NCBI GenBank assembly: GCA_002269645.1
Contig: NIVC01000914.1
Location: forward strand, 1-64,000
DNA from: Macrostomum lignano
Lineage: Eukaryota
DNA: 64,000 nt
Direction: 5' to 3'
Shown: in pieces, positions 1,804 to 52,384 of the stretch
Layout of the letters: each line of letters starts with the position of its first letter
Numbering within the stretch: position 1 is the stretch's first letter
Translations under genes and position numbers: made by a program
Notes under the pieces: model-generated
The model's database searches: none
Told to the model about the DNA's origin: nothing
The model's input: only the letters and a program-made list of their open reading frames with translations

Positions 1804-3579
1804 TCAAACATCTTGACTTTCACGGAGACAGTCAAGCCGGGATGCGGTCAGCTCAATAACAATTAGAGCCACGACAAGAAGGGCCAGGACGCTCATAAAC
1901 AGCACAAAGAAGCATCTGTCGGCGGCCAGAGCCACAATACGCCATTCGTTACACCGATCGGACTCGGCCGCGCGATTTGCGTCCGCAACTCGTTCGGATC
2001 GATCTGAATTTGGCTGGAATTCCCGACTTGGGCCTGCAAATGGCCAGAGCGGGATTTTTCTAAAGCATGTGGGGCCTTTTTGAATGAGTTAAAATGCTTG
2101 TCGAGAGTCACTCTCACGCAGTTTCCAATTTGCCCTTCAGGACGAATCGATTGAGAAAGAGCGCCCGAACGGCTTTGTTGTCCACGAGAGTGTCGGCTTG
2201 CTGTCGCAGATGGCAGCCCAGAACGAAAACGTTGCCGAGTACGTTCGCCATTGTCATGACAACAGCCAGGCTGTAGTAACCCGCTGTAGTCGGAGACAGT
2301 TATGGTTAATAAAGAAAAAAATAATGAAAATTGTAAACGAAATGACACTCACTAAGCAGGGGAACGGACTCGCTCTGAGTTGGAGTATAGTTGCCAGAGA
2401 GCTGCAGGAACACGCACATGGACAGCACAATGGTGACGCTGAATGACACTCGCTCACCGCACTCTGGCGGCAGTCGGAAGGTGAGAGCGGAGATGGCGAG
2501 CAGCAAGATGCTGGCAGGATGAGGTTCACCAAATAGAATGTAGATCTTCTCTACAATACAACCAGATCACTCGTTAATTAATTAATTTTGAATCGAACCA
2601 ACTACCTTGACCCACTAGTTATTAACCGCAGAGGCAACTCTGAGTTAGCACTATACCTGAAATGTGACACTGAACTCAATGTAGGCGTAGGTAGTCATGT
2701 CCCTCATTCTGTTGCTCATCCGGAGCAGACAGTACTCGTTGCTCTCTGTGAGAAACGTCGTCACAGTGTCGCTTGGATTTAGTGAACCAATTTGCAGAGC
2801 GACGCTCTCGGTGATCATGATGTTGGCCAGCTTCAGGACGCAAGTCTGCCTGTCGTACGGGAAGTTCAGCAGCTTTAGCTGACACTTCGAGGTTACATTG
2901 ACTTCGACTATTTGGTGCACTCTACCGTTGCTGAAAACCTTTGCGGGCGATTTACCGGCGGTCAAGTCCTTAACTTCTATGCTGGAATGGCAGCGGAACG
3001 CGTGTCGATAATTTATAAAAAGATAAAACTTTGTAATGGATTAGAGTTGTCTTACACGTCATAAAATGTGACATCCGGTTGCCAGATCATATTCACGGGA
3101 ACAATTATGCTTTTCACCTGGTCATAGCTGGAATTAAATTTTCCAAGCCACGATAACCGTTGGTCTATCCAGTTCTGAAGTGTAATAAACTTGAAAATTA
3201 AACTAATAACTTCTCATACATTAGATAAAAACTATAAAACTAATTGTGAAATTGTCAAACCATCGATAGCCAAAGTTGCTGAGTCAGATGCTGCGCCGTT
3301 GAGTCCTGAAGAGTAAAAGTTTTGAATAACCAGATCGCGTGAATGACAAATTGATTGACGCTGTCTCACCATTTTGACCAGGCTCGCAAACAGGACAAAA
3401 GCGTTGATTAGGTTGGCGGTGCCATTGTCAGGGGGCGGCCGGGCTCCAGCTACGTAGACTCCGCCCGAGGTCAATCCGAGACCACGCATCAAAACTTCGT
3501 CCGGCGAAGGCGCGAACCCATCTGTCAGGTTGCAGGTGCAGCAGAGAGCCAGAGGGAAAATCACTGGGATGACGCGCAT
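1804..3579 (-). CDS. Cys-loop ligand-gated ion channel subunit A (nAChR-like, non-alpha), 7 exons, about 439 aa if a 1-nt deletion in exon 5 is corrected
   Basis: Exons 3579-3370, 3305-3261 (45 nt), 3174-3056, 2981-2657, 2550-2353, 2283-2118, 2059-1804, all GT-AG. Motifs: signal peptide, WIDQRLSW, IWQPDVTFYD, Cys-loop C-QLKLLNFPYDRQT-C, M2 [23 protein letters not shown]4 EWRIVALAADRCFFVLF. Summed length is 1319 nt, one short of a codon multiple. Confidence 0.88.
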
Positions 3580-4038
3580 CGCAGTAATGAATCGACTGGT
3601 CAGGATTGGCAGCTTAAAGAGTCCGCCGCTGTCTGCTTTTAGTTCAACTAAATGGGCTTATTTGCCACCAGTCTGGGGAGAGGCAAGCATATTTACACGG
3701 CTAAAGTTTGATGAAAATGGCCACCTGACTTAATAAGCGAACCAATGGCTTGCATTGTAGTCCGGGTTTCGACCGGTACCGCGGTTTCCACTTCCAATAG
3801 ACCAGCTGGTGAGCTAGGCTATAGAGGCTCACATTAAATGACAGTTATTTGCTGAAACAGTTTTGCAGGTTTCTCCGAAGTGAAGAGTAACTACGAGCGT
3901 ATTGACTCAGTAGCAGCTTCACTTGCATGTAGAGCAGCGCCAACCATAGAAACGAATTATTCATATTGCGTACTGCATAAATTTCCACAAAAGTGGAAAT
4001 GACATAACACAGCATGTAAAGTATTGCGTTCGAGTTGG

Positions 4039-4290
4039 GGGGCCGTAGCCCAGCGGTAGCGCAGCTGCTCTGGTGTGCCAGCGACCCAGGCTCGATTCCA
4101 AGTGCAGTCACATTAATTTGGGGCTGAATTGGAATCTCGGCTTGGCTCTGCTCGTGCAATTAACGGCCTTGAGAGCCAACCCCCCAAGGCGCAGTGAAGT
4201 GTACATGCCTAACGATAATATAAAGTTAGGGCCGCTGTACACTCCTGTGTGAGTGTGTGCCTGCGTACGTATCCGCGCGCTTGTATGCCT
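4039..4290 (+). mobile_element. tRNA-derived SINE-like element, family 1
   Basis: Head GGGGCCGTAGCCCAGCGGTAG...GGCTCGATTCC has Pol III A- and B-box-like motifs. The body (CATTAATTTGGGGCT...GAGAGCCAACC...TACATGCCTAACGATAA) recurs at about 8865-8990 and 29540-29690. Confidence 0.55.
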
Positions 4291-4425
4291 GCTCAGGGGA
4301 GTCGACGGAATGGACAGTAATGCCTCTCGCCGGTTGTGTGCCTATGTCGCTTAAAGTGCGCCAGGGTGCACATAACCCCCATGCCTCTAATAAAAAAATT
4401 GCGGTCGAGTTGCCACACTATGAAG

Positions 4426-4833
4426 TTATAAAGTGAAACGAGGGATATATGGAAACAGTTTGCAAGAGTTATGAGGCATATTGAACAGCAGAATAGAATC
4501 AACCATGGACAACAACACTAGTACAACCTCTGTCTTCATGTCTTCAATCGGCACATTGCACTCGATTTTCAACTCTTGAAGCCAACGGTTACACACTCCA
4601 ACGGCCCACTTGTTTCGCTTAAGAGTATTCGGCGACTTTGTGTTCAGGTTCAGATCTCTAATGTTGTCCAAGTTGCCGCGATTAACATTCTGATCACGCT
4701 GATCTAGCCCTTCTGCCGAAAGCTGATTAGGGTCGTAGTCTCCAGCGAAGTCTTCACTGAAGTCAACTTCAGTTGGTTTAAAATATAACTTTCTTCCATT
4801 TTTCCTTGCCAGTAAGCTTAGACTTTGCTTCAA
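4426..4833 (-). mobile_element. Possible Crypton/DUF3504-type transposon N-terminal fragment
   Basis: The ORF contains KSPNTLKRNKWAVGVCNRWLQE...PIEDM, resembling the NT.....WAV..F..W helix upstream of DUF3504 tyrosine-recombinase domains. Similarity recalled, not searched; no catalytic domain visible. Confidence 0.35.
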
Positions 4834-5279
4834 GATCAGTCATGGGTTAAAGCCGAGTTAAAGGAGAGGGAGACAGACTAAACAATGCGAATCTCTTTTA
4901 TGTCTATGGTCTCATGTCTTTTCTATCTTCTCAATTAAATACCGTCTTTTCACGTCCAGTAAAATCAAGTTGAAATGTATTCCGATAACTCCCACAAAAT
5001 GAAAGTGGTTTAAAATAATATGTGTGCCATACGTGTAGTTTTGAGGTTGGTATGAATTTCAGTCCCGAGAGCCGGCCGAAACCTCTCGGAAAATGGACTT
5101 CAACATGGTTTAATGGGAGCTTGTAGAGGCGCCACTAGAGAGTAATTCGACACCAAAATTAGTTCCATTAATATTTCGGATAGTATAGAATTTTTTAGAA
5201 AAAAACTAAAACAATTGAAAACTGCGTATTCTGATGTTGCCTTTTTGATTGTTAAATCTTTAATTGACTTGATTTAGCT

Positions 5280-5460
5280 TCAGGAGGTTCCGGGCATCCG
5301 GGTACAGTGGGGAGGCGTCGCCGACCATTTTGCTAACCCCTGGCGACCACGGGCAGCTAGTGCTGCGGTGTCGCGCAGGGAGATCCGGTGGTGCCGGTGT
5401 CCGCAGCGCAGTCCCCCTCCCGAGAGTCCAGAAGGTGGATGGTCGCTCACCCGGTAGCTC
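5280..5460 (-). repeat. Dispersed repeat, inverted partner of 7535-7725
   Basis: The reverse complement matches 7535-7725, including the shared CTGCGCGACACCGCAGCACTAGCTGCCCGTGGTCGCCAGGGGTTAGC. Confidence 0.8.
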
Positions 5461-5600
5461 TAGTTAGCAGACTAACTAGACTAACTAGTAATCAAACACT
5501 GACTGCGCTTAGTCAGACCCTAATCAGACCTTAGTTATGACCATCAGTAAGTACGAGTAAAGTTGTAAAGATAGGCTTGTATGCACTTATGGATGGATGC

Positions 5601-8600
5601 TTAGGCACCCAGACAATCGCTCCTGGAGACGGAGGTTTCAACAACTAGGAGGGCGATGGCGAGAGACATTGTGGCAGCCAGCATGACCAGGAAGAAGCAG
5701 CTGTCTGCCGCAGATGCCACGATCGCGAATTCGTTTTCCAAAACTCCCCGATCGTCCGGAGTTGGCCCGACAGTTTTTCTGTCGTTGCTGATTCCGCAGA
5801 GCGCCAGCCGGTTGAGAAACAGCAGGCGAATGGCTCGGCTTTGAACGCGCGACTCGCTGAACTGTCGATAATGACAGCTCAGGACGAAAGCGTTGCCAAC
5901 TACGGTTAGAATTGTCATGGCAACCGCCATGCTGTAGTAACAGGCTGCAATTGTTTAATTGTGGTTGTGAATACATGCGTCCATGACATACATCAGGGGT
6001 CGACAAACTCCTGACCGCAAAGCCTCTCTATCCGGCCCTCGGATCCTTTGAAACTTCACAATGCCTCCGGCTCGCTCAAGGTTTGTCTCTTCTCTTCTCT
6101 CTCTATTTTTCTCCACTTTACTCTACTCCACTCTACTCTACTCTACTCTACTCTACTCTACTCCACTCCACTCCACTCCACTCCACTCCACTCCACTCCA
6201 CTCCACTCCACTCCACTCCACTCCACTCCATTCCTCTCCTCTCCTCTCTTCTCCTCTACTCTCCCCTACTCTCGTCTCCTCTCCTTCTCTTCTCTCTTCT
6301 CCACTCCTCTCTCCTCTCTTCCTCGCTCCTGCCATGCGCTAGATTCTCTATCTGGCCTTTGAGAATAAAAGTGTACCGACCCCTAGCATAAATGGAACAG
6401 TAAGCTGTAAAATACCAGCACGCTTACTAAGCAGGGGAACGGACTCGCTCTGAGTTGGAGTGTAGTTGCCAGTGAGCTGCAGAAACACGCACATTGACAG
6501 CACAATGGTGACGCTGAACGAGACTCGCTCGCCGCACTCTGGTGGCAGTCGAAAGGTGAGAGCGGAGATGGCGAGCAGCAGAATGCTGGGCAGGATGAGG
6601 TTCACTACGTAAAACTTGGACATGCGCTGTTGATAAAAAGTGAATTCTGTTTTATGCTTGGCTTCTGTCGTGAGAGCTTTCTTAAATAATCCAACCTGAG
6701 CAATATGGAAGAGCAAACTTGACAGCAAACAGAATCAAAAGTCTCCGGCAAACTTACCTGAAAGCTCACTAAAAACTCAGCGTACTCGTAGCCCACAGCT
6801 GGCACTATACGGAGACTCAAATTCGCAATGCAAAATTCATTGCTCTTGACCAGAAACTCGACCAGCGCTTCGTCCAGAGCTTTTCCGCGCGGCTCAACAT
6901 TCAGCTTGATCTTCTCCGGTCGCTGCATCATCGTGGCCGCTTTGATGATGCAGACCTGCTTATCGTACGGAAAGTGCAGCATTGACATTCCGCACTTCAG
7001 AGTCACTACTTGACCAACTGTGCGCAGGACTTTGCCGCTGCGTTCCAACAGCGCTGGCGCGACTGCAGCGGTGATGTCTTTCACCTCCATTCTGCGCGGT
7101 TCGGTAGGTGCAAAAGGGTGGGAGCGAAATATGAAAATGACTCTTTTGGTGACTATTTGTAGATACTAAAATCGATCACCCCCCACACACACGTGTGTCG
7201 TTGTCACCACTCGGATCAACCAGTGGGTGGCTTTTAAGCACCGGGAGAGGTGGGCTAACGCCCACGACTGCCGGCAATCCCGCGCGGTTGTCCCCTGTCC
7301 TTCCTCAGCCCTGTGCAGGGCCCTGCTTGGACTCAACCGCAGGGACATCAGGGCGGTGACCACCTCTCGGGACATGGCTGTTTTGCCAGGCATCGCCACC
7401 TCCAGGGAAAAATCAGCGGTGAAGAATGTCCATTCTGCATCTCGGCCCAAACCCGGACATCTCCAATGTTTTCTCCTCTCGGACATCTCGGACATCTCGG
7501 ACATCTCCTCTGCCAGCTCGTCCGCTACCTAAGGGCTACCGGGGGGGGGGGTGACAATCCACCTCCTGGACTCTCCGGAGGGGGACCGCTCTGCGGACAC
7601 CGGCACCTCCGGAACTCTGCGCGACACCGCAGCACTAGCTGCCCGTGGTCGCCAGGGGTTAGCGAAATTGGCGGCAACACCTGCATCCGGATGCACGGAG
7701 CCCCCTGCAGCTGAGTCTAAGTCTAAGTCTAATGGAGGCGTGGCGCAGAAGGATGGATAGGTGCATTCGACTTAAGCGAGATTACGTTGTGTCCGAGGCG
7801 CACGCACAGACTTATCAAGCTAGCTTTCCGTGTGAAATGCTACTAAAATAGCTAGCTGAGATAGGCATTTTCCAAACGCATTATGTGTTGTACTCGTAAG
7901 ACACACGAACTCGAATGGTATCTCGAACAAATCTTCAAGTTTAGCCACATTTTGCCTAGTTCGAGCCTCGGGTAGAATTCACCACCGCTGTCGCCTCTGT
8001 GTCCTTGATTTCTTGATGTTGATCAGCGGTCAGTTCAACTAGACTCGATGTGTCGTGACTCTCTTGGTGTCTCTTGTCGAAAGCCCCCGGCCCTAGATCC
8101 AAGTCCGCTCCCCAGTTCGACTGGTGTTTGGTGAAACCCCGAAAAACCCGAAAGTCTCAAAAATTTGTCTATGGTTAGAATACGGGGGCTTCGCTCCCCC
8201 CACCCCAACGGACGCTAGCAGCCGAAACTATCTATGGTAAAGATCGTACTACAAATATGTCTATGGCCTTTGGCAGCTATCAATATCGTCTGCCAATTCC
8301 TCCTCACACATCGTAGAACGCAACATCCGGCATCCAGATTCGTTCTACCGGCACCAGAATGTTGCTAGTTGAATTTGCGGTGGCATTGACTTTGTCCATC
8401 CATGACAGTCGGCTGTCAAGCCATTCCTGCAATGCAGTATAGACAGAGCTAGTATGAGAACATATATGACTGTTTTATTGTAAACTTATTCTCACCAGAG
8501 ATAGCCATAGTTGCAGTATGATCTCTTGTGCAGATGAGTCCTGAGAGTTGAAAAAAAATTATAATTCAATTAGGGAGAAGCAGGTAAGAGCAACCATGAC

Positions 8601-9590
8601 TACAAATCTAACGCCGCTCAATATTAGGCCTTCGCCATGAATTGTACCTACGACAAAGTCAATCATCTGGAGTGACCTCACAGTATCATCAAATCGCATA
8701 CGTTGTACCACTTTGCGATTGCCTCTCTGCGGCTACTTCATCGGTACTGTAAAGCTTTGCTCGAACTTCATTTAGAAATAAAATCCGCTGTTCTGTCTAA
8801 GCCACTCACAGGTAAATGTGTCTGACTCTTGCGCTACGACCCCTGGTTTAATTACGTATTTAATTACATTAATTTGGGGCTAAAATTTTACTGGGGTTGT
8901 CATGTGATTTACTCCCATGAGGGCCAACCACCAACGCACAGAGAGTGTAAATGCCTGATGACTAGAAAGTCAGGGTCATGTGTGACAGCGTGTGCTCATG
9001 CCTGATGACTAGAAAGTCAGGGTCATGTGTGACAGTGTGTGCTCATGCCTGATGACTAGAAAGTCAGGGTCACGTGTGACAGTGTGTGCTCATGCCTGAC
9101 GACTAGAAAGTCGGGGTCACGTGTTACAGTGTGTGCTCATGCCTGATGACTAGAAAGTCAGGGTCATGTGTGACAGTGTGTGCTCATGCCTGACGACTAG
9201 AAAGTCGGGGTCACGTGTGACAGCATGTGCTCATGCCTGACGACTAGAAAGTCAGGGTCAGCACTGGTACTTAGGACGATGTCGCGGAAAGCGAAGGCGT
9301 GGAGACGGTCCCTGCTGCAAAAATTCATCCATATAATTCATAAAGCGTCATAGCAAGCGACGGTTTTTGCTCACCACCTTCACCAGGCTGTTTAGCTGAA
9401 TAAACACTGTCACGATATTTGCCTGCCCGTTGTCAGGCGGTGGCCGAGCATCCCTGTTGTAGGAACCGTTGCGCAGACCCAGCAGGTGCATCGCCAGATC
9501 GTCGAATGAAGCTTTGTCAGACTGTGATGTCGACTGCGACGGGAGTGTGACGAAGCTAACGGCAAAAGTGATAATATGAAGAATGTTCAT
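5601..9590 (-). CDS. Cys-loop ligand-gated ion channel subunit B (nAChR-like, non-alpha), 6 exons, 418 aa
   Basis: Exons 9590-9375, 8540-8496 (45 nt), 8426-8308, 7091-6758, 6626-6428, 5944-5601, all GT-AG with consistent phases (1257 nt). Motifs: [35 protein letters not shown]2 [19 protein letters not shown]4 [16 protein letters not shown]. Confidence 0.93.
6113..6320. repeat. (CTCTA/CTCCA)n pentanucleotide repeat in channel B intron 5
   Basis: Read directly. Confidence 0.95.
7535..7725 (+). repeat. Dispersed repeat, inverted partner of 5280-5460, inside channel B intron 3
   Basis: See 5280-5460. Confidence 0.8.
8865..9262 (+). repeat. SINE family 1 body followed by a 47-bp minisatellite (GCCTGATGACTAGAAAGTCAGGGTCATGTGTGACAGTGTGTGCTCAT, about 6.5 copies)
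   Basis: 8865-8950 matches the body of 4039-4290; units begin at 8953, 9000, 9047 and so on. Confidence 0.8.
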
Positions 9591-10345
9591 GTCTAGTTAC
9601 GGCTAATGAATTTCTGGCTTTCAATTTCGTTGAGTTGGTGAGCCAAAAGCAGTTGGAAGCTGGCGAGAATGGGATAAAAGTAAAACGATTCTGTATTTGC
9701 TTACAGCTGAAACCTCTTCCCCAACCAATATCCGCAAGTGGCATTTAGCATCCCTCATGAACCCACTGCAAACGGCTATGCCACATGCTAGGCAAATAAT
9801 GGTTGGCAAACAGAGGTGAAACACTCCGCCGAGAGCTATGCTACCGGAGTAACACAGATCGGTAGACCGAGACAATCGAGGTTACCGGATCAAATTAGCT
9901 ATTCAATCAGTTTCATTGTAACTTTTCAGCACTTCAGTCTTCAATTCAGTTCGGCTAAACCAGTTTGCCCTTCATTGGCCACATTGAAGAACGGAATGCA
10001 GCCCTGCTATCAAAATTTGCTGTGGCTGCTAAATTTCTAAGTTAGAAACAGTTGCCTGTTTGGATCGATTGCTGCAATATACACCCAGTAGTGTACAATG
10101 GAGGCACTTCAGCTTCTACTCGAAAGAAATCGAACTTGTTGACATTCCACACTTGACTGGTTTGGTTTCACCTCTTCTTTTTCAATTTTTCCCTGCGACT
10201 ACTCGAAACATCCGTCTATATCGTCGGGAAGTGCAACCGCCAACAAACGGAAATGAGACCGCCAAAACGATTGGCACTTGCGACTTGTTTTTGTTTTAGA
10301 CTCGTTAGCAGTGTTGGACAGCGTTATTAAAAAAGTCTAATTCCG

Positions 10346-11232
<887 letters not shown>

Positions 11233-11235
11233 ACC

Positions 11236-11548
11236 GACAGTACGACTCGCCGCTGCTGATGTGGCCTGCAAGCTGGATTCGCCCACGGCGCAACAGATCG
11301 ATTGGACGGACCGGGCTGGCGCGGCGATACAGTGCCTCGTTGGAAATTCGTCGCTTGTCGCAGATCTTGAAGGCGGTGCGCAGCATCCACTTGTTGCTTC
11401 AGCGAGTCCGTCAGCGTCCAGGTCTCAGCGTTGTACAGCAGGACGGTCTCGACCACCGCCTGGAACAGCGCTGCCCTCTGGCGGTCAGACAGGGCCTCGG
11501 ACTGCAGGACTGCCCTCACGGAACGGAAGGCAGCCCAGGCAATGAATT
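11236..11548 (-). mobile_element. RTE-like LINE fragment
   Basis: Translation [55 protein letters not shown] is typical of the post-RT region of RTE elements (YxxETW). Confidence 0.75.
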
Positions 11549-13694
11549 TTAACCTCAATAATAATAATGGCTTCTTTAATCAGGGGTTGTTACCTAAATG
11601 ATGAGATTTCTTCTTAGTGATAATAACTGGCAGACGGTACTTACTACTAGTCTACTTGTGAAGAAACAGTAGACTAATGTGAACACGATCGGTTGCATGA
11701 AAATTTCTAAATGCATGATGACAGGAAGCAGAGCAGTTCAGCGGTAAACGCCTCTGCGTCCGACTCTCCACACGACCCGGACACACATAAAGATTCGAGT
11801 ATTCTGTTTGCTACATTTGATACCCAACGAAATCTTACTTCTGCTTTGATCAATTTGCTTATATTTGTTTCAGATCTGGTACGTAAATGTAGAGTTGATG
11901 AATTCCGAGCAAATGGACTTGTATCCTGAAGAAACAGCTCAGGATTAAATATGATAATAGCCGCGGGAATAGATTTCTACCCCCCTACTTAGGTGAGCAT
12001 TTGTCTAAGTCGATGCAAAGCTATTCGCCTTGAAGCATCTATAATTCCTGCTTCATATGCAGTCTGTTAGCACTTTCTTAAACTTTTGCTGAGCTTCAAG
12101 TGAACTGAAACCCCCGCTTAGCTCCAACAGTTCTTTCTCTTGCTTTCAGCCTAGCTGAGCGCCAGCTTCCACTTTGCCTCCGACTCCCCAGCGCAGTGTC
12201 CAGCGTGTGCTTGAGTCGATTGCTCTCTGGCTATTTGAGCAAGCGGAACTCTCATGAATTGCCGATGAAACCTGTGCCACAATTTGCGGCTGAAGTGACG
12301 AGCCTGCAGAGCAAATATGCTGGCCGCAGAGACCAATAGTGCTGGAACAGGCATCCCCAGAAAGGTCTCATTGAATTCAGCCTCTCCTATTCTTCCTTCG
12401 TTCTATGCAATTTTTAATTAACCAAAAAACCAACCACTGCCACCTGTTGTTGTTGGGATCAAAATTAGAAAGGCGACGAGAGAGAGAGAGGGAGAGAGAG
12501 TTGAGAGATCTCAGGCGGTTGCGTGCCCGGCAGACTGGCTGACCGGGCACAGGAAGAGCCGAGAGCGAGGCCGGGCAGACGTCAGGAGACAGCCGCCCCC
12601 CCCCCTCAGGACGAAAAATGGGAATATTGGGAACTCTGAGTCTCTAAAATGCGAGTCTGAACTCCACCACCCCGGTGAAGTGAGGGGGGGGCAGGCCCGC
12701 GTGAGTGAGGCTGGAGCAGATCCAAATACTACCGAGATTGGCAGACAAGCCACCTGGTGATTTTAGCAAGTGCAAGTTGGGCCACCGAGCCATTGCTCTG
12801 GATGATCCAGCCTTTACTCACACATTGGAGAGAGCTGGGAGTCCAGCCGGGGCTTGGAGATGAAAAAAACCGCTCGCGCATCGAGATGGAGATTCGATGT
12901 CAATTTTTTTTTAAAGCGCAGAGCAAAGTGCAAGCAAACTAGACTCGAACTCAAAACTAAATAGAGCTGCTTCCGACATACAAGTACAGCGAAACATGAG
13001 CTCTGAGTGTCTTCTGCAGCTTAAAAAGGCACTGCGGAGAAATCCTCCGAGCTGTCACTCGCAACTGCAGGTGGGCCCGATACTTACGAGGTAGTTTTCC
13101 CATTTCTCCAGTTGTCCCATGGGGTTCGTCCACTCTCTGGCTGACAGCCCCCCCTGGCCGTGGGTTTTTTGGAGGATTTCTCCTCTGAAATTTACTCCCG
13201 CATTGCAACCTCGGCCTGAAACCTGATCTCTTATCGCCTGCTATTAATGTCCGCATCGGGCCCTACAGATCCATGCATAAATGGGCGCTAATTAGCATAA
13301 ATTATCCGCCCTATCGTCGCCATCGAGGCGGAAATGAACGGCCGCAGGAAAGTCGCACACGAGGGCGAGAACGAACTGAGATTTGCTTGGCCAGCCGCTG
13401 AGAGATTCCATTGATGTTCAGCTTGTATTTTTACTGTGCGTCGGACAGCGGCGCACCTGCTTGGGTCTGTCAATTACGCAAAGAGATGAACGCGGGAGGG
13501 TTACATTTTGTGGCGTGTGGAGGGAGGCGGTGTTTTGAAGGGCTCGCAAGAGCGCTAAAAGACAGCAATTGCTTCTTTCTGTTTCTAAATCCTTAGTCAG
13601 GGAGAGAAAGAGAGTCGCTAGATGGAATCCCGGGTCACTGGGTGCGCTCTCCTGGTTGTTCCGCTAAGTTTGTCGCCGTTTGATCATCTGCTCT

Positions 13695-16600
13695 TTAGAT
13701 GCCCTCGGAGCCGAGGAAGCCGCTATCCACGATGCGACCGAATAGGGCGTAGGCCTCGCGGTAGGCGTCCTCGGGCATGCCGTCCAGGATCAGGTCGAGA
13801 ACGCGGCCGTCGCGGGCGAATTCCATGGTGCGGACGAGTTTGTTGCGCTGCTCGGCGGTCAGGTTGACCTTCTTGGCGTAGTCATCCACGCTGCGCTCCT
13901 CTGTGGGGAGGGTTCAGGATGGGCAGGATGGGTCAGGATGGGTCAGGATGGGTCAGGATGGGTTAGGATGGGTCAGGATGGGCAGGATGGGTCAGGATGG
14001 GTCAGGATAGGTTAGAATAGGTCGAGATGGGTCAGAATAGGTCAGGCCGGGTCAGGGCAGGTCAGAATGCGTCAGGATTGGTCAGGATTGGTCAGGGTGG
14101 GTAAGAGTGGATCAGATGGATCAGGATGGGTCAGGATGGAGGATGGGTCAGAATAGGTCAGGCTGGGTCAGGGTAGGTCAGGATGGGTCAGGATGGGCAG
14201 GATTTGTCAAAGTAGGTCAGGCCGAGTCAGGGTAGGTCAGGGTGGGTCAGGATGGGTCAGGGTGGGTCAGGGTGGGTCAGGGTGGGTCAGAATGGGTCAG
14301 TTGGACTCAAAATAGCTTAGGCGAAGTCATATTAGATCAGAACGGACTAGATCAAGTCAGCTGTGAGATGAGTAGAGTCAGTTAAGTCCCTTATAGCCGT
14401 GAGAATAGTAGCTGAGCAACTTTGATCAATTTCTTCAGCACATGCGGCAGTCTGGTGGATTGCCTGACATATTATTTTTTTGAGTCATGCTATGAATTTC
14501 TGGATGGCAACTGAAAGAACCTGAAAGATCTTTTCTATTTCTTATTCTCTGCGTTGTGGGGGGGGGGGAACATCCAGTTCTGCTGCTGTCTGCAAAGGTT
14601 CTGCGACAGGCTTTGACATTCAATAATAGTTGAAGCAATTCGATTCAAGATGGAACAAAGATTTAGCCAATTTATTGTGTTTTTACTGTTCAAATGTTTG
14701 AGAAGACATAAAAAATGTTCTGGTCAATGTTTCCTGCTTTTGCATTTGCATTGACTTTTCTAATATCTCCTTTTTCGTGTCATTGTTCGTGGTTGACTTT
14801 CTGTGTCTGAGTTCAGGTCTTCTGTGCATTCGTAAGTCGGCTGTTCTCACCCTATCTCACCCTATCTTACTCCATCTACCTCCATCTAACTCTATCTCAT
14901 CCTATCGCATCCCTTCTCACAATGTCTCATCCTATCTCATTATATCTCATTTCATCTCATCCAATCTCACTCTACCTCATCCTTTTTCACCCTATTTCAC
15001 TCCATCTATCCTTATCTAACTCCATCTCATCCCATCTCATCATGTCTCATCCCATCTCATCCCATCTCATCCCATCTCATCCCATCTGACTTTATCTTAT
15101 CCTATCTCATCCTATGTCATCCCATCTCACTCCATCTCATTCCATCTCACTCCATCTCATCCCATCTCATCCCATCTCATCCCATCTCATCCCATCTCAT
15201 CCCATCTCATCCCATCTCATCCCATCTGAATTCATCTTATCCCATCTCATCCTATGTCATCCCATCTCACTCCATCTCATCCCATCTCACTCCATCTCAT
15301 CCCATCTCATCCCATCTCATCCCATCTCATCCCATCTCATCCCATTTCATCCCATCTCATTTCATTTTATCCCATCTCATCCTATGTCATCCCATCTCAC
15401 TCCATCTCATCCCATCTCACTCAATCTCATCCCATCTCATCCTGTCTCATCCCATCTCACTCCATCTCATCCCATCTCATCATGTCTCATCCCATCTCAT
15501 CCCATCTCATCCCATCTCACCACATCTTATCCCATTCAATTCCATCTCACTCCATTTCAATGTCAGCCAAAAGTTCTTCATATTCTGAATTCCTTCATCT
15601 CAATGAATATTTTCCTATTAAATTCTGCCAGTCACGATCGCGAACAGCAATATCTGTTTAACTAAAACAGAAAAAAATTCTGCATTTCTCAGACTCCCAT
15701 TTCGTTCCCTTCAGTGCCGGATTCCCTGCCCGAGTTGCAGCTCTAAAAATGGACTTTAGAGTGTAGAAGCAGGATTGTTAATAATCTCACTCTGTATTTC
15801 CGGGCTCCTCTTGCAGTATTTGAAGAACTTGAAAGCATCTCAGACAGACAGAAAGTGAAATGAGAATTAACGCTAATATATTGTTTGAGAACTTTCGAAC
15901 AGTGACTACTCGATGAGATTGGCTCACCGGTCAGCAGCTTGGACAGGGTGTCCGGGCTGCCCTCGCCCAGGACACCGGGGATGAGCCAGTAGTGGAATCG
16001 TTGGATGAACATCTTCAGGATGATGCTGGCTGGCCGGTCCTCTGAAAGCATAGGAAAGTGCGCGATGTACTTTTGAGAGTGGACTAAACTCATTTAGGGT
16101 TTAGTACTGTAATAGTGCTGGGGTGAACTAGTGTCTGATAGAGGGAGTGAACTAGTGTCTGATAGAGGGAGTGAACTAGTGTCTGATAGAGGGAGTGAAC
16201 TAGTGTCTGATAGAGGGAGTGAACTAGTGTCTGATAGAGGGAGTGAACTAGTGTCTGATAGAGGGAGTGAACTAGTGTCTGATAGAGGGAGTGAACTAGT
16301 GGGAGTATGTTTGATTTTAATATTTGATCAGATATGTTATTATAGTAAATTTTGTCCGAACAGCTCTGATAAGAATTCATCTTACAAAGACAAATTTCAC
16401 CCCCCACAGCGCAGGCCGAGCAGCCCGATGAACTTTTCCCACGCTACCGAAAAATAGGTTTATGCTCTCACAGCACTGCTCAGGGGGCTGCTGCTGGCTT
16501 CCGCCTTCTCCCTTTTTAGATGGGGCATTTTTTTCTGTCCCAAAAGTTTGGCTTCGGCCGCGCGCCCACCACAATGGAGTCCATATTGTGTCCCGCGTGC

Positions 16601-19600
16601 ATTTTTACCTTTCATTTGCCCAATGAATTGCTTGCCCGACCGGGCTGTGATTAATGCTTTCGGGTGTTCGTATATGGTGGCTTCGGTAGTGCTTTCTACG
16701 GTTGTGCCGGGTGTTTTTTTCTGGGCTTTTTTGGGCTGCTAGCGATGTGTTTGACTGCGAGTTCATGTGTGTGCGTGTGTGTGTATGTGTGTGTGCGTGT
16801 GTGTGTGCGTGTGTGTGAAGAATGAAGAAACGTGAACATGAAGAATGAAGCAGCGTGAACATGGAGAATAAAGGAGAATGAACATGGAGAATAAAGGAGC
16901 GTGAACATGAAGAATGAAGGAGCGTGAACATGGAGAATGAAGGAGCGTGAACATGGAGAATAAAGGAGCGTGAACATGGAGAATGAAGGAGTGTGAACAT
17001 GAAGAATGAAGGAGCGTGAACATGGAGAATGAAGGAGCGTGAACATGGAGAATAAAGGAGCGTGAACATGAAGAATGAAGGAGTGTGAACATGAAGAATG
17101 AAGGAGTGTGAACATGAAGAATGAAGGAGTGTGAACATGGAGAATGAAGGAGCGTGAACATGGAGAATGAAGGAGCGTGAACATGAAGAATGAAGGAGTG
17201 TGAACATGAAGAATGAAGGAGTGTGAACATGAAGAATGAAGGAGTGTGAACATGGAGAATGAAGAAACGTGAACATAAAGAATGAAGGAGTGTGAACATG
17301 AAGAATGAAGGAGTGTGAACATAAAGAATGAAGGAGTGTGAACATGAAGAATGAAGAAACGTGAACATGGAGAATGAAGCAGCGTGAACATGGAGAATGA
17401 AGCAGCGTGAGAGAGTTTCTGCTTGCTTGGAGACAGGCGCATGGGAAATCCACTGATTTTGAAAGAAAAAATCAAATCCCAAAAGACATTCATACACAGT
17501 GAGCAAACGGACAATTTTATTTCAAAATGAAATTAGTAAATTCAGAAAATTCTGAAAATTCAGAAAAATCTCGCGCAGTTCCGCTTCGCTCTTGAATCCT
17601 TCAACCCTTGACGGAGTTGAAGAGGCTCAGAATCCATCCGAGTGCCTGCGACACTAAGGTGGGCTGCTGTCAGCTTCAATATATTGACATTTTTGCAGAG
17701 GACCTCACAGTGCGTCACTTATTCCCAGTGTGATTAATTCCTGATGCAGAATATTAGACTGACTTGATGACAAAAAAAAACTTGATAAATACAAATCTCC
17801 AGTTGACAGGTGAATTTACAGAGGCTGTCACCCGGTCGCCTCCAGGTGACGGGAGCTGTGACAGGTTTTTGACACCCCGAAATTTTTAGCTGTCACAGCT
17901 CCTCAAACTGATAATTAAAATCGGTGACCGCTTAGACTGAGAATGAAGGAAATGTCAATCTATGTGAATGTGCATGTGAATCGCTATTTAAATCTCTATG
18001 TCAATCTCTATGTCAATCTCTATGCAAATCTCTATGTCAATCTCTATGCAAATCTCTATGTCAATCTCTATACAAATCTCTATGTAAATCTCTATGTCAA
18101 TCTCTATGCAAATCTCTATGTCAATCTCTATGCAAATCTCTATGTCAATCTCTATGCAAATCTCTATGTCAATCTCTATGCAAATCTCTATGTCAATCTC
18201 TATGCAAATCTCTATGTCAATCTCTATGCAAATCTCTATGTCAATCTCTATGCAAATCTCTATGTCAATCTCTATGCAAATCTCTATGTCAATCTCTATG
18301 CAAATCTCTATGTCAATCTCTATGCAAATCTCTATGTCAATCTCTATGCAAATCTCTATGTCAATCTCTATGTCAATCTCTATGCAAATCTCTATGTCAA
18401 TCTCTATGCAAATCTCTATGTCAATCTCTATGTCAATCTCTATGCAAATCTCTATGTCAATCTCTATGTCAGTCTCTATGTCAGTCTATTCAAATCTCTA
18501 TGCAAATCTCTATGCAAATCTCTATGCAAATCTCTATGCAAATCTCTATGCAAATCTCTATGCAAATCTCTATGTCAGTCTATTCAAATCTCTATGTCAG
18601 TCTCTATGCAAATCTCTATTCAAATCTCTATGTCAATCTCTATGTCAATCTCTATGCAAATCTCTATGTCAATCTCTATGTCAATCTCTATGCAAATCTC
18701 TACGTCAATCTTTATTTAAATATATATATAAATCTCTATGCAAATCTCTATGTGAATCTCTACTCTCACCATGAGATTAAATATAATTGTAGAAGATTCT
18801 GAATCTTAAGATTCTGAAAATTGAGAAGTTAGAAGTCTCACAATCTCACCCTGAGAGATTGAAAAGTGGAAGAACAAGCCCCTTTATCTCACCCTGAGAC
18901 AAAGTAAGCAGAGAGGGCCGGGGCGGTTCCGCCCCCAATAAAACAGATAAATTTGCAGCGCACTGACCTGCAGGACTCAATCAGGCTAATGGAGTCGAGT
19001 TAGTTGTTTGACTGACTATAAACTGAGCGGGAGAATTCCCACCTACTCCAGCAAACAAATGGGCCCTACCCAAGCCCGACCACCTCTGGGTTCACCAGTC
19101 CAGCTAATGGCTAGTATCCAGCTGTAAATTAACATTCCTGCAAAGACTTTTAAAATAGCATCTGGACTGGAAAGTCTGATGCCCGATTTCCATTCCTTTC
19201 GATTAGTTTGTCTCCCGAATCCAGATTCTTCCCGAATCCCAATTCTTTCCGAATCCCAGTTCTTCTCGAATCAGGATTCTTCCCGAATCCCAATTCTTCC
19301 CGAATCCCGATTCTTCCCGAATCCCGATTCTTCCTGAATCCCAATTCTTCCTGAATCCCAATTCTTCCCGAATCCCGATTCTTCCCGAATTCCAATTCTT
19401 CCCGAATTCCAATTCTTCCCGAATCCCAATTCTTCCCGAATCCCGATTCTTCCCGAATCCCGATTCTTCCCGAATCCTGATTCTTCCCGAATCCCGATTC
19501 TTCCTGAATCCCAATTCTTCCTGAATCCCAATTCTTCCCGAATCCCAATTCTTCCCGAATCCCGATTCTTCCCGAATCCCGATTCTTCCCGAATCCCGAT

Positions 19601-22600
19601 TCTTCCTGAATCCCGATTCTTCCCGAATCCCAATTCTTCCCGAATTTCGATTTTTCCCGAATCCCGATTCTTCCCAAATTTCCATTCTTCCCGAATCCCA
19701 ATTCTTCCCGAATCCCAATTCTTCCCGAATCCCAATTCTTCCCGAATCCCAATTCTTCCCGAATCCCAATTCTTCCCGAATTTCGATTTTTCCCGAATCC
19801 CGATTCTTCCCAAATTTCCATTCTTCCCGAATCCCAATTCTTCCCGAATCCCAATTCTTCCCGAATCCCAGTTCTTCCCGAATCCCGATTCTTCCCGAAT
19901 CCCGATTCTTCCCGAATCCCAATTCTTCCCGAATCCCAATTCTTGCCGAATCCCAGTTCTTCCAGAATCCTTCCTAAGTCTTCTGAAATCCCCAAAACTG
20001 TCATTACGATTGTTTTCAAGTCTGAGTTCACAGGACTTCTAAAAAGAGCTCCTGGATAGGTGGCGTCCCTTATCCAACCAGCATATCGGAACTCAACCCC
20101 ATCCAATAAGTCGCAGTTGCAGATGCTGTTGTTGGCAACAAGCCAATGCTTTAATACAAGGCCGCTTCCAGTCCAGATGCTATTTTTAGAAGTCCACAAT
20201 TGGAACAGATCCTTCGCCATTTTTCTATACTCGGAAGGCTACGCATTCCAATAAGGATTTATCAGCTTCTCAGATGGGCTTTTGGCCATAGACAAATGCT
20301 GAGTAATCAACAACGCCGAAGGCTGCTCACTGGCGGTGCACAGCGCCTTGTCCTCGTCGTAGCCGTCGATGCAGTCGGCCCGGCCGTCGCAGATGAAAGC
20401 GAACGAGAGGCACTGGCCGCTCTTGCAGGGCCACGGAGTCGAACGGGGACAGTCGTTGCCAACAACTCCGGGGCCGGCTGCGGGATCCGGTTGGGAGATT
20501 TATGGGAAAACTGGGATTTTTGAAGAACTGGGTTTTGGGAAGAATTCGGACTCGGGAAGGATTGGGATTTGGGAAGAATTGGGATTTAGAAAAAAGGGAA
20601 TTAGAAATTGGGATTTAGGGAAAATCAGGACTTAGGGATAATCAAGATTTAGGGAGAATTGGGATTTAGGGAGAATCGGGATTTAGGGAGAATCGGGATT
20701 TAGGGAGAATCGGGATTTAGGGAGAATCGGGATTTAGGGAGAATCGGGATTTAGGGAGAATCGGGATTTAGGGAGAATCGGGATTTAGGGAGAATCGGGA
20801 TTTAACGAGAATCGGGATTTAGGGACATTCGGGATTTAGGGACAATTGGGATTTAGGGAGGGATTAGGATTTAGAGAGAATCGGGATTTAGGGAGAATCG
20901 GGATTTAGGGAGAATCGGGATTTAGGGAGAATCGGGATATAGGGAGAATCGGGATTTAGGGAGGGATTAGGATTTAGAGAGAATCGGGATTTAGGGAGAA
21001 TCGGGATGTAGGGAGAATCGGGATTTAGGGAGGGATTAGGATTTAGAGAGAATCGGGATTTAGGGAGAATCGGGATTTAGGGAGAATCGGGATTTAGGGA
21101 GAATCGGGATATAGGGAGAATCGGGATTTAGGGACATTCGGGATTTAGGGAAAATCGGGATTTAGGGAGGGATTAGGATTTAGAGAGAATCGAGATTTAG
21201 GGAGAATCGGGATTTAGGGAGGGATTAGGATTTAGAGAGAATCGGGATTTAGGGAGGGATTAGGATTTAGGGAGAATCGGGATTTAGGGAGAATCGGGAT
21301 TTAGGGAGAATCGGGATTTAGGGAGAATCGGGATTTAGGGAGAATCGGGATTTAACGAGAATCGGGATTTAGGGACATTCGGGATTTAGGGACAATTGGG
21401 ATTTAGGGAGAATCGGGATTTAGGGAGAATCGGGATTTAGGGAGAATCGGGATTTAGGGAGAATCGGGATTTAGGGAGAATCGGGATTTAGGGAGAATCG
21501 GGATTTAGGGAGAATCGGGATTTAGGGAGAATCGGGATTTAACGAGAATCGGGATTTAGGGACATTCGGGATTTAGGGACAATTGGGATTTAGGGAGGGA
21601 TTAGGATTTAGAGAGAATCGGGATTTAGGGAGAATCGGGATTTAGGGAGAATCGGGATTTAGGGAGAATCGGGATATAGGGAGAATCGGGATTTAGGGAG
21701 GGATTAGGATTTAGAGAGAATCGGGATTTAGGGAGAATCGGGATGTAGGGAGAATCGGGATTTAGGGAGGGATTAGGATTTAGAGAGAATCGGGATTTAG
21801 GGAGAATCGGGATTTAGGGAGAATCGGGATTTAGGGAGAATCGGGATATAGGGAGAATCGGGATTTAGGGACATTCGGGATTTAGGGAAAATCGGGATTT
21901 AGGGAGGGATTAGGATTTAGAGAGAATCGAGATTTAGGGAGAATCGGGATTTAGGGAGGGATTAGGATTTAGAGAGAATCGGGATTTAGGGAGGGATTAG
22001 GATTTAGGGAGAATCGGGATTTAGGGAGAATCGGGATTTAGGGAGAATCGGGATTTAGGGAGAATCGGGATTTAGGGAGAATCGGGATTTAACGAGAATC
22101 GGGATTTAGGGACATTCGGGATTTAGGGACAATTGGGATTTAGGGAGGGATTAGGATTTAGAGAGAATCGGGATTTAGGGAGAATTGGGATGTAGGGAGA
22201 ATCGGGATGTAGGGAGAATCGGGATTTAGGAAGAATTGGGATTTAGGGAGAATCGGGATTTTGGGACATACGGGATTTAGGGAGAATCTGGATTTAGGGA
22301 GAATCGGGATTTAGGAACAATCGGGATTTAGGGAGGGATCAGGGTTTTGGGAGAATCTGGATTTAGGGAGAATCTGGATTTAGGGAGAATCGGGATTTAG
22401 GAACAATCGGGATTTAGGGAGGGATCAGGATTTTGGGAGAATCGGGATTTAGGGAGAATCCGGGATGTAGGGAGAATCGGGATTTAGGGAGAATCGGGAT
22501 TTAGGGAGGGATCAGGATTTAGGGAGGGATCAGGATTTTGGGAGAATCGGGATTTAGGGAGGGATCAGGATTTTGGGAGAATCGGGATTTAGGGAGAATC

Positions 22601-27090: not shown

Positions 27091-27306
27091 ATGCTGCTGC
27101 TGCTGCCGCTTCTGGCCGGCCTGCTATCACCGATAGGCCCGGCCGAGGCTAAACGGGTGCTGGACATCACGGAGAAGAACTTGGCCAGCGTTGTGGGCAC
27201 CAAGACTCTGGCGCTGGTGCTGTTCTACTCGCCCGGCTGCCAGCCCTGCGTGGAGGTGCTCTCCGTCATGCAGCGGTAAGGCTGCCTGTGCGCCTGTCAG
27301 CCTGAC

Positions 27307-27371
<65 letters not shown>

Positions 27372-27384
27372 TTCTGTCTGTCTT

Positions 27385-27431
<47 letters not shown>

Positions 27432-27432
27432 T

Positions 27433-27489
<57 letters not shown>

Positions 27490-29833
27490 CTGTCCGAGTG
27501 TATGTCTGTCTGCCATTGAGTTCATAAAGCCCCAGAACTCGCAGACACCGAGCCCCGATCCGCCTCGCACCCGCAGCCTGGCCCTGTCCCACTCCGTTTC
27601 GCATCCGGACGTAAAATTCGGCCGCATCGACATCCGCCAGGAGCCGGTGCTGGCCATGCGGTTCCACGCCGATGAAGTGCCGGTGTTGAAGGCCTTCCCT
27701 CATTCGTCGACGCCGATCACCTTCTACGGCGAGGTGACCGAGGAGGCGCTGGTGAAATTCCTGCGCGGCCTTCGCCTGCAGAGTGCCGTCAAGGCCGGCC
27801 TGACGCGCTCCGGCGAGAGTCTCTACGGCGGCGCCTCGCTGGAGACCGCGACCGACGATGGCGGAGCGGCAGACGAAGGCGACTCAGCGAACCCGTGGAC
27901 AACTGGCGCCACGGTGGTGGTGAACGCCAGCAGCTACGCGTCCGTGATCCTGGACAACGAGACCAACGCCATGCTGGCTCTGTACACGCCGGAGTGTGGC
28001 GAGCCGTGCGCGGTCTACGAGAAAATTGCCGACGTCTTCCGGCACGAGGGCCACCACGTGGTGTTCGGCCGGGCGGACGTGACCCGGGAACCTCAGCTGG
28101 CGAGGTTCTTTCAGGCGCAGAGGAACCCGACGCTGCTGTGGTTCCCCAGGGGCGACAAGAATAACATTGTGAGGTGAGGTGCCGAGTTTGAGACTTGCAT
28201 GCTCTACTGCAACCCTTTGACCTAAATCACTAAGCCCATTGGGTGAACAGATGGTCCTCTAATCAGTTAGGCAAAATTTTAGACACGCAACCTTCCAATC
28301 AAACATGCAACCTTCCAATCAAACATGCAACCTTCCAATCAAACATGCAACCTTCCAATCAAACATGCAACCTTCCAATCAAACATGCAACCTTCCAATC
28401 AAACATGCAACCTTCCAATCAAACATGCAACCTTCCAATCAAACATGCAACCTTCCAATCAAACAGGCAACCTTCCAATCGAACATGCAACTTTTCAATC
28501 AAACAGGCAACCTTCCAACCGAACAGGCAACCTTCCAATCAAACATGCAACCTTCCAATCAAACATGCAACCTTCCAATCAAACAGGCAACCTTCCAATC
28601 AAACAGGCAACCTTCCAATCAAACATGCAACCTTCCAATCGAACATGCAGTCTTTCAATCGAACAGACAACCTTGATCCAACAGCTGGGTGTTAACCCCC
28701 AATCGACAATCGTAACGCTCCGGTCAAACAGAACGATCTCGCCAAATCCCCTTAAACCAGATACGGCGGCGACGTGGACCTGCACGAGATTGTCGGTTTC
28801 ATCAACGACATGACCGGGTCGCACCGCCAGCCGGACGGTAAGCTGGAGCCTGGCGCTGGCCGGGTGGCCCAGATCGAACGGCTACTCAGAGACCGAGCGG
28901 CCGACCTGGTGCTCGGCCGGAACCTGCAGCAGCTGTCCGAGGAGGTGGCGCAGGCGGCCAGTGATCTGCCGCACTCCAAGCGCTACGTGTTCTATTATCA
29001 GCGGCTGTTACGCCAGCTAATGAAGGTATCCAGCCAGACCGAATTATACTACTTGCTCAAGTAAATGAGTAGAGTATACAAGATTTTTATTTTATTATTC
29101 TAGAGGGTGCTCGTAGTTTACATAACAGTCCGCGAGTTGAAGCTCATCCTTAGACTAAATAAATCTTCAGAATGTTAAACATAAAGAGTGTGTTTGTCAT
29201 GTGAAATCTATAGAAGGTATATGCGTGGAGACACACACAAGCAATGGCTACAGATTGCTTAAGACAAATAGAAAAGAATATCTACTCAAAACGACGCCGC
29301 ATGATCCTCAAGAAGGCCGGGTTCTCAAGTGTTTAGCGATTACAGTGTCTTTACTAAACCGAGGGTTGAACAGTGCAAACACGCTTTTCGCATCTCTTAA
29401 ATGACTCCGGAATAGATCAAACAATCCGCGATTAAGTGTTGACTACATTGAAGCTTTGCCAGCTGAGTTGAGTAGCGAGGCGCTGACACGTCGGACTCTC
29501 GCGTTAAGGAAAGGTCCATGCATGCTGAGCGGTCTTGTCCGTTTGATTCAAGCCCCTCCAACCACAGGAGGACCAACCTCCAGAGGTCACACTTTTCTAC
29601 ATGCCTGACGATAAGAAAGTCGCGTCTGTTGTACACCCTGTGTGAGCGTGTCTGCGTAAGTATGCGCGCGTGCAGAGGAATGAGTATGACTGCTTGCGGC
29701 TGCACTCGAAGCACCCATGCAGACAGCCAACTAACTAGCAAGTTAAACTAGCTAGCTAACAAACAAACAAACAAACAAATTAACAAACTAACTAACTAGC
29801 TAACTAACTAACTAACTAACTAACTAGCTAACT

Positions 29834-51720: not shown

Positions 51721-52384
51721 TGTTGGGCTGTTCCAAAGGCAATTTTAGCACAATGCCAAACTCCCATGCCTATAATAACCAATAAAAACACGAATCAGTG
51801 TCCGGACACAACGAATAGGAAAGCATGGAAAAGTAAAAAAAGAACTGGGAGAACAAAAACTATTTTAAAAAAACACACACATAAGCACTGGATTAGCGCA
51901 GTCTGATGCAAATGAAAAAATATTTCAGCCGACAAATAAATAGCATTTCTTGTCCAAGCAACTTTTTCTTACACAGAGACTGTAATATAGGAGAATGAGC
52001 AATTTGCAGCTAGTGCCGAAATTTTCAATAGTTGCGGCAGCGACAAATATAATAGCAAGGCAACAAAAAGGCGTTTGTTAAATAGAACAATTTACATGCA
52101 GACACAAGTGCTTTAGATAAGGAAAACCCATAGCCAGTTGTCAAAGGTAACGAGAATGAAATCTGTATGGGCCTGAGTAGGCGGCAATATCTGTCAGCGC
52201 TTTATGGATCTGTAATTTTGCGCAACAACCTCTGTCTCGGATTGTGTTAAAATTACAGGTGAACCGTGAAGACTGGAGATTGAGATTACTTCAAGCGCTT
52301 CTGGCTACACCTCCTCATTTAGTCATAAAACTGCTTTGCTGCGTCTGAAAGAGAATTCGCCGCAAGAGTACACAAAGTTCAGGA

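Follow-up and report, generated by a model that had tools for sequence, protein, structure and literature searches.

What opens a Cys-loop channel whose subunits have lost key residues of the acetylcholine (ACh) site? This question is raised by two neighbouring genes, gene 1 and gene 2, on the minus strand at positions 1804-9590 of a 64,000-nucleotide stretch of the flatworm Macrostomum lignano (Platyhelminthes, Macrostomorpha; assembly GCA_002269645.1, contig NIVC01000914.1, positions 1 to 64,000), which is called the window below. Lineage-specific families of nicotinic acetylcholine receptor (nAChR)-like channels without the ACh site are widespread in spiralians and nearly all are orphans; that some of them are sensory is known from the octopus receptors. 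The original prediction, made from the sequence alone, described the pair as tandem nAChR-like channels, placed them correctly in a flatworm and proposed an invertebrate sensory radiation of pentameric ligand-gated channels (pLGICs).

As judged from their sequences, genes 1 and 2 are tandem members of a Macrostomum-lineage-specific family of Cys-loop subunits in the cation-selective branch that holds the nAChRs and the serotonin (5-HT) type 3 receptors. Channels built from family members may open to a non-cholinergic ligand that acts at a remodelled pocket, a reading in which we place middling confidence. The result stands at the level of annotation: it supplies correct gene models, flags a frameshift, defines the family and places it in the tree, and holds no new mechanism.

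Pore and Binding-Site Residues

Three-frame translation and reading of the DNA showed two tandem pLGIC genes, with the ATG of gene 2 at 9590 and the last base of the gene 1 stop codon at 1804. The splice models and the Pfam matches bore out the predicted pair of nAChR-like genes. Neur_chan_LBD gave E values of 1e-28 and 5e-28, and Neur_chan_memb of 1e-18 and 2e-17, for gene 2 and gene 1, respectively, all above the gathering thresholds. A third channel gene was not found in the whole window by tblastn with gene 2 as query. Residues were mapped by HMMER alignments to the solved human alpha4, beta2 and muscle alpha1 subunits and by column mapping on a hidden Markov model (HMM) alignment. These three nAChR subunits were the best solved relatives (E 1e-35 to 1e-34), and 5-HT3A gave 1e-31 (4e-31 by PDB). 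The PDB alignments covered the extracellular domain (ECD) and M1-M3, and some of them also M4.

The Cys-loop and the cation-type GER at -1'/0' of M2, both noted in the original prediction, were recovered in the alignments to alpha4, beta2 and alpha1. Both genes, together with all listed members of the clade described below, showed G-2', E-1' and R0', which is the -1' Glu ring without a Pro insertion at -2' that marks a cation-type M2. From these residues, membership of the cation-selective nAChR/5-HT3/ZAC branch is predicted. The parts needed for gating and conduction were complete (FPYD in the Cys-loop, pre-M1 Arg, M2-M3 Pro, 9' Leu gate, -1' Glu ring), and the elements coupling the ECD to the transmembrane domain were intact. 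The Gln at 16' and the short M3-M4 loops also proved correct; from the M3-terminal His to the pre-M4 NEF/NEW motif the loops measured 45 residues in gene 2 and 56 residues in gene 1. Gln16' was present in 25 of 173 related channel units and the loop-B Trp was lacking in 41 of the 173, and neither trait was unique to genes 1 and 2.

The ligand-binding side gave a different picture from the canonical receptors. As predicted, the loop-C vicinal cysteines were absent and the loop-B Trp was replaced in both genes (Table 1); the Cys-Cys pair was missing from all clade members as well. Neither gene therefore qualifies as an alpha-type nAChR subunit, which is defined by vicinal Cys-Cys at the loop-C tip. 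The beta9-beta10 segment had 27 residues in both genes vs 33 in alpha4, and loop C was about 6 residues shorter. An ACh-binding principal face carries the loop-A Tyr, the loop-B Trp and two loop-C Tyr; in both genes the loop-B Trp was missing from it, as were the Tyr at the proximal position of loop C and the Cys-Cys tip. The predicted lack of the ACh site held in part, since the aromatic box was not wholly lost: both genes kept the Tyr of loop A, the Trp of loop D and the distal Tyr of loop C. On their own (+) face, the subunits would not bind ACh by the canonical cation-pi mode.

The retained aromatic residues would suit subunits that complement or assist others in ACh-gated heteromers just as well. 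In that case genes 1 and 2 would encode beta-like subunits that supply only a (-) face or a structural position, and conventional alpha-type subunits of M. lignano would provide the ACh site. The loop-D Trp was found in both genes and in every paralogue with an annotated microexon, the missing vicinal Cys is the defining trait of non-alpha subunits, solved beta2 was among the best matches (E 2.5e-34), and the pore and its coupling elements were intact. However, vertebrate beta2 retains the loop-B Trp and the W-x-P-P motif, and the clade has lost both. With the family size and the placement given below also counting against it, we regard the accessory role, which is the main rival, as unlikely on the whole.

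Two further conserved cysteines were observed in the family. One lies in NEFC/NEYC at the start of beta9 and was invariant in the alignment; the other follows M4 by 2-6 residues (..SRSDC, ..SRLDC). On sequence grounds they are a candidate pair for a disulphide, specific to the clade, by which the C-terminus would be tied to the ECD.

Paralogous Family in Macrostomum lignano

To search for the family, 1.84 billion representative proteins were scanned in full by HMMER, with a database copy of gene 1 (P0004) as query. This resulted in 8106 matches at E<=1e-3 and 28 matches at E<=1e-30. All matches above 35% identity among these representatives came from M. lignano. The nearest proteins of other species were 24-35% identical; the next-best matches were mollusc, annelid, brachiopod, hemichordate and fish proteins named "5-HT3A-like" or "alpha-7/9/10-like" (24-34% identity). 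Trematode nAChR-like proteins were present in the library (P0149) and were no closer.

After fused models were cut into units, at least 13 distinct paralogous units were obtained, all from M. lignano, less than 65% identical in pairwise comparison and placed in tandem arrays. The pair of gene 2 and gene 1 is one array; the others were P0009 (2 units), P0013 (3), P0014 (3 or 4) and P0003 (2), and P0015 contributed 1 further unit. The two-unit array of P0009 was confirmed on an Mlig_3_7 contig, at a locus designated L001 (M. lignano NIVC01003108.1). There, P0008 and a P0001-like unit form a second tandem pair at 9962-12647 and 15308-16574, on the downstream side of a gene named in the fused UniRef model P0009 as fibrinogen C-terminal domain-containing. 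Later exons of the second L001 gene were not found within the 22.6 kb examined. The genes are thus not single-copy. One-to-one orthologues at low copy number, as expected of a beta-type nAChR subunit, were not what the scan returned, since the matches above 35% were confined to M. lignano and numbered at least 13 units.

Several features were common to all units. Beta1 starts with RPPPDNGxAN and beta9 with NEFC, which holds an extra, invariant Cys; the loop-B Trp and the W-x-P-P motif are lost, and loop C is short in the same way. M2 is near-invariant with Gln16', LLFLNR follows M3, and a further Cys lies a few residues past M4. The C-x13-C spacing of the Cys-loop was invariant in the family alignment. 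All clade members shared the 27-residue beta9-beta10 segment, and the loop-B Trp was replaced by I, M, V, Q, A or R. Every family member listed had E-1', R0' and L9', and M2 stayed near-invariant over the at least 13 paralogous units. The former pocket positions in loops A, B, C and E varied by paralogue, with the loop-D Trp retained. By sequence, this is a lineage-specific radiation with a diverged ligand-binding domain (LBD) and a conserved pore, which agrees with the radiation that had been proposed. At least 13 paralogues with fast-diverging extracellular domains exceed what a structural role would need, which speaks against accessory subunits.

The family follows a familiar invertebrate pattern: for molluscs and annelids, lineage-specific nAChR-like families that expanded in tandem and lack ACh-site residues are amply described (PMC6896357). 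No paper on the Macrostomum family or on flatworm orphan pLGICs was found in the literature searched.

Phylogenetic Placement

A neighbour-joining (NJ) tree was built from 173 channel units, cut from the 150 best representatives plus alpha4, beta2 and alpha1 (sequences from the PDB alignments). The M. lignano clade was monophyletic in 97/100 bootstraps, and the more distant M. lignano gene P0160 was its sister in 58/100. Vertebrate 5-HT3A references stood apart from the clade in 100/100 bootstraps. The nAChR references excluded the clade in 49/100, in a tree where the clade sits on a long branch and which has no anionic outgroup. Genes 1 and 2 were not orthologous to conserved beta subunits, the outcome that the predicted radiation called for, and the accessory role loses ground here because the clade is orthologous to no conserved non-alpha group. 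Nor are they 5-HT3 receptors, as they did not nest with 5-HT3A and lack the loop-B Trp that 5-HT3A-like proteins have.

On a profile of the nAChR group (144 nAChR-like units), the clade scored 198-282 bits and genuine 5-HT3A 300-350 bits, so the clade is farther from nAChRs than 5-HT3A is, which again does not suit accessory subunits of nAChRs. On the 5-HT3-like profile, nAChR references outscored the clade. Group-profile scoring at first favoured nAChR; as a classifier it was rejected because the 5-HT3A control scored even higher on the nAChR profile. Word-indexed homologue searches returned 7-8 proteins, of which the non-flatworm ones were all 5-HT3A-like; this was not taken as evidence of 5-HT3 affinity and probably reflects shared words at the start of M2 (GERVSF). 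Together, the bootstraps and bit scores point to a long-branched lineage of the cationic branch, which by sequence lies farther from nAChR and from 5-HT3 than those lie from each other.

Gene Models, Frameshift and Selection

In gene 2, all five introns were GT..AG and the spliced frame was open over 418 codons. The introns of gene 1 were likewise all GT..AG and short (64-106 bp). The acceptor of its last intron (2027) was the least certain junction; a stronger-looking AG 7 bases upstream is out of frame. The MAKER fusion model P0012 was tried as arbiter of this intron and rejected, as its frame switches at that point.

Exon 2 of each gene is a 45-bp microexon, reading DSTAQHLTQQLWLSM in gene 1, and the paralogue locus L001 has the same microexon at 15598-15642. 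An exon of 45 bp at the corresponding position is typical of vertebrate nAChR genes. Within intron 1 of gene 1 (64 bp), a segment of exactly 45 nt (3321-3365, minus strand) translates to DSVNQFVIHAIWLFK, which resembles the adjoining microexon and the canonical D-x-x-N-Q...W-L motif. The segment may be a decayed duplicate microexon or a coincidence; a relic is not claimed, because eight other equally high-scoring chance matches occurred elsewhere in the window. Intron 1 of gene 2 is 834 bp long, compared with 64 bp for the orthologous intron of gene 1, and holds a 47-bp minisatellite (6.6 copies, 94% identity, 8951-9260).

In gene 1, one base is missing from a C run, which shifts the frame in the middle of M1; the original prediction had not noted this deletion. 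It reads CTGCCAGC (CTGCC-AGC) against CTGCCCAGC in gene 2, and its exon 5 measured 198 bp vs 199 bp. Three M. lignano database copies of gene 1 (P0004, P0011 and P0012) were in frame through this site; therefore, intact copies of gene 1 exist in M. lignano. P0004 (UniRef A0A1I8HXL4) and P0011 (A0A1I8IGV7) differed from gene 1 by few residues. P0012 (UniRef A0A1I8IAP1) is a fused model in which an LDLa-domain protein is joined to the C-terminal half of gene 2 and to the whole of gene 1; it is colinear with the window on the minus strand from 20478 to 832, and its gene-1 unit was 96% identical to gene 1 of the window. Since a homopolymer is affected and the three copies do not share the deletion, it may be either an assembly error or specific to one of the near-identical copies of a recently duplicated genome.

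Nei-Gojobori estimates by region were compared between gene 1 and gene 2. The M1-M2 exon was under strong purifying selection (Table 1). The extracellular exons were 38-55% identical (LBD exon 39%) with dS above 1.6 or saturated, the M4 exon also showed dS above 1.6 or saturation, and M3 gave a dS of 0.57. Divergence of the ECD is thus free. Because dS in the M1-M2 exon is far below that of the other exons, the low value suggests gene conversion between the tandem neighbours, on top of purifying selection.

These results also bear on a pseudogene explanation, in which the genes would be duplicates that are decaying or no longer functional, in a genome rich in repeats and recently duplicated. 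The frameshift of gene 1, the transposable-element-like remnants and satellites around and inside the locus, and the failure to find a transcript-based gene model for either gene would all suit decay. However, the frame of gene 2 is open across six exons with canonical splice sites, the dN/dS of the pore exon is 0.10, the functional motifs are invariant across all paralogues, and the gene 1 deletion is a homopolymer change that the other copies do not share. Decay would apply at most to this copy of gene 1, and we consider it highly improbable.

Candidate Function

The explanation that we favour is gating by a non-cholinergic ligand. Cation channels would most likely form from one of these subunits alone or from several members of the family, and they would be opened by a ligand other than ACh at a remodelled, paralogue-specific pocket. 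The ligand could be an internal transmitter or an environmental chemical, either being possible.

Several observations weigh against this explanation. The copy of gene 1 in this assembly is frameshifted in M1, and for both genes MAKER-type UniRef models were found and a transcript-based NCBI (BOX15_Mlig) model was not. Divergence of the former pocket is also expected from relaxed constraint. On the complementary face, the loop-D Trp is conserved in all cases with an annotated microexon, and genes 1 and 2 still have the loop-A Tyr and the distal Tyr of loop C. The AlphaFold2 (AF2) model of paralogue P0001 showed a beta-rich ECD and long M1-M4 helices; it was built on a 16-row alignment and reached moderate confidence, with a mean predicted local distance difference test (pLDDT) score of 61 and 60-75 in the ECD. 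A Foldseek search with this model tied nAChR and 5-HT3A at template modelling (TM) scores of 0.4-0.5, without separating the subfamilies.

A special case of non-cholinergic gating is the environmental one, with an independent flatworm co-option of nAChR-like channels as chemosensory receptors. Tandem paralogues would each be tuned to different non-cholinergic compounds, such as metabolites of diatoms or microbes, and would be expressed in ciliated sensory cells, either rostral or epidermal. By analogy, the genomic pattern matches that of the chemotactile receptors, in that a lineage-specific family has expanded in tandem, its pore is conserved and its LBD, which lacks the ACh signature, has diversified; moreover, the chemotactile receptors and the orphan Alpo4 show that sterol-like or terpenoid ligands are possible for such channels (PMC10338036). 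On the other hand, chemoreceptor repertoires are typically larger than this family of about 13 units, many invertebrate pLGIC expansions without a known sensory role show the same pattern (PMC6896357), and the best 60 of the PDB sequence matches (302 in all) included no solved chemotactile receptor. Neither the sequence nor the literature searched yielded anything on the site of expression of genes 1 and 2. We judge the chemosensory version distinctly unlikely. If it were true, nicotinic-type channels would have been turned a second time, independently, into receptors for contact or environmental chemicals. M. lignano is a transgenic flatworm that is tractable by RNA interference, and a compact family of about 13 units, in which the pore is conserved and the binding domain varies, could suit the de-orphanising of such channels; it could also show whether co-option to chemosensation occurred more than once.

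Surroundings of the Gene Pair

The coordinates of all features are collected in Table 1. Upstream of the pair lies a gene with LDL-receptor class A repeats, which the public MAKER model A0A1I8IAP1 wrongly fuses to both channel genes. The window is very repeat-rich, with many satellite-like open reading frame (ORF) artefacts at 15-63 kb. Short conserved coding-like fragments occurred between genes 1 and 2 and on both sides of the pair; they had no Pfam match and are probably transposon remnants. The fragment between the genes is included in P0012, and the other two resemble each other (..LFxAVVxxxLxYxxE.W..). Two segments farther along share identical ORF translations and 15-mers (e.g., 53303-53347 = 63624-63668), which indicates a segmental duplication about 10 kb apart.

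Table 1. Positions of the channel genes, their elements and neighbouring features in the window.
Feature	Position	Strand	Description
Gene 2	5601..9590	minus	Intact pLGIC subunit gene, 6 exons, 418 amino acids (aa); manual splice model and Pfam
Gene 2 exons	9590-9375, 8540-8496, 8426-8308, 7091-6758, 6626-6428, 5944-5601	minus	Last exon includes the stop codon
Gene 2 exon 2	8496..8540	minus	45-bp microexon; beta1-beta2 loop and beta2 strand, carries the loop-D Trp
Gene 2 Cys-loop	6950..6994	minus	C160-x13-C174, FPYD motif
Gene 2 loop B	6923..6943	minus	KAATMMQ; Met replaces the cation-pi Trp (alignment to alpha4, beta2, alpha1)
Gene 2 loop C	6773..6808	minus	Shortened, without vicinal Cys, distal Tyr retained
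Gene 2 M2 pore helix	6465..6539	minus	G-2', E-1', R0', L9', Q16', N20'
Gene 2 extra Cys sites	6830-6844, 5604-5624	minus	C214, C415
Gene 1	1804..3579	minus	pLGIC subunit gene, 7 exons, ~428 aa if frame restored
Gene 1 exons	3579-3370, 3305-3261, 3174-3056, 2981-2657, 2550-2353, 2283-2118, 2026-1804	minus
Gene 1 exon 2	3261..3305	minus	45-bp microexon; beta1-beta2 loop and beta2 strand
Gene 1 Cys-loop	2840..2884	minus	CQLKLLNFPYDRQTC; C158-x13-C172
Gene 1 loop B	2813..2833	minus	KLANIMI; Ile replaces the Trp
Gene 1 M2	2390..2464	minus	One residue different from gene 2 (S/T at 18')
Gene 1 extra Cys sites	2729-2743, 1819-1839	minus
Gene 1 deletion	2512..2514, between 2513 and 2512	minus	1 bp in C run (CC; CCC in gene 2), frame shifted mid-M1
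M1-M2 exon (exon 5)	Gene 2 6428..6626; gene 1 2353-2550	minus	94% aa and 89% nucleotide identity, dS 0.40, dN/dS 0.10
Upstream neighbour gene	13716-20478	minus	LDL-receptor class A repeats; Pfam PF00057 at 20293-20478, E 1e-6
Thioredoxin-domain protein gene	27191-28177	plus	E 1e-10
Diphosphomevalonate decarboxylase gene	32936-33670	minus	MDD_C, E 5e-46
BACK-domain match	57346-58677	minus	Weak, just under the Pfam cut-off
Large simple repeats	1-231, 1101-1510, 6087-6311, 10405-11233		15-mer x15, (TATC)x102, pentanucleotide CTCTA/CTCCA arrays (gene 2 intron 5), (AGAC)x207
Coding-like fragments	4516-4752, 606-812, 11007-11558		First one between genes 1 and 2
Similar segments	~52300-53950, ~62500-63970		Shared ORF translations and 15-mers

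Comparison with Known Systems

Human beta2 (PDB 5KXI chain B) shares with the flatworm genes the pLGIC fold, the Cys-loop, the E-C/D-C-G-E-K/R start of M2 with its -1' Glu, the 9' Leu, the lack of vicinal Cys and the loop-D Trp. Unlike them, it has a loop-B Trp, the W-x-P-P motif in beta6, a long M3-M4 domain and a conserved orthogroup. 5-HT3A is a cationic pLGIC as well, and the first half of M2 in the Macrostomum genes reads GERVSF as in the 5-HT3A-like proteins found; 5-HT3A differs in its loop-B Trp and in its separate position in the tree.

Among flatworm channels, the ACh-gated chloride channels of schistosomes (SmACCs, PMC4055736) are likewise nAChR-like subunits with unconventional properties. 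They are ACh-gated and anion-selective, whereas the Macrostomum genes lack a complete ACh box. A further contrast lies in the selectivity filter, which is of the cation-type G-E-R form in the Macrostomum genes and a Pro-Ala-Arg motif in the SmACCs.

Alpo4, an orphan nAChR-like channel of the annelid Alvinella pompejana, also has no vicinal Cys and gave no response to ACh or 5-HT (PMC10338036). Its 16' residue is unusual too, being Met there and Gln in the Macrostomum genes. In contrast to these, Alpo4 has a full aromatic box including the loop-B Trp and is an isolated gene rather than a member of a tandem family. The nAChR-like families of molluscs and annelids show lineage-specific tandem expansion and high sequence diversity (Jiao et al. 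2019, PMC6896357), in a survey that did not cover flatworms. The mollusc expansions are far larger, at 99-217 genes, and often intron-poor through retroposition, whereas the flatworm genes keep 5-6 introns and the 45-bp microexon.

ACh elicits no response from the chemotactile receptors of cephalopods (CRT1, CRB1; summarised in PMC10338036). Like the Macrostomum family they are nAChR-derived, lineage-specific and tandemly expanded, with the ACh signature motifs lost. No specific sequence relationship between the two was seen in the best 60 of the 302 PDB matches, and an independent origin is assumed from taxonomy. For the cephalopod receptors, expression in sucker sensory cells and gating by terpenoid or bitter compounds have been shown, whereas the Macrostomum family is known from its sequence.

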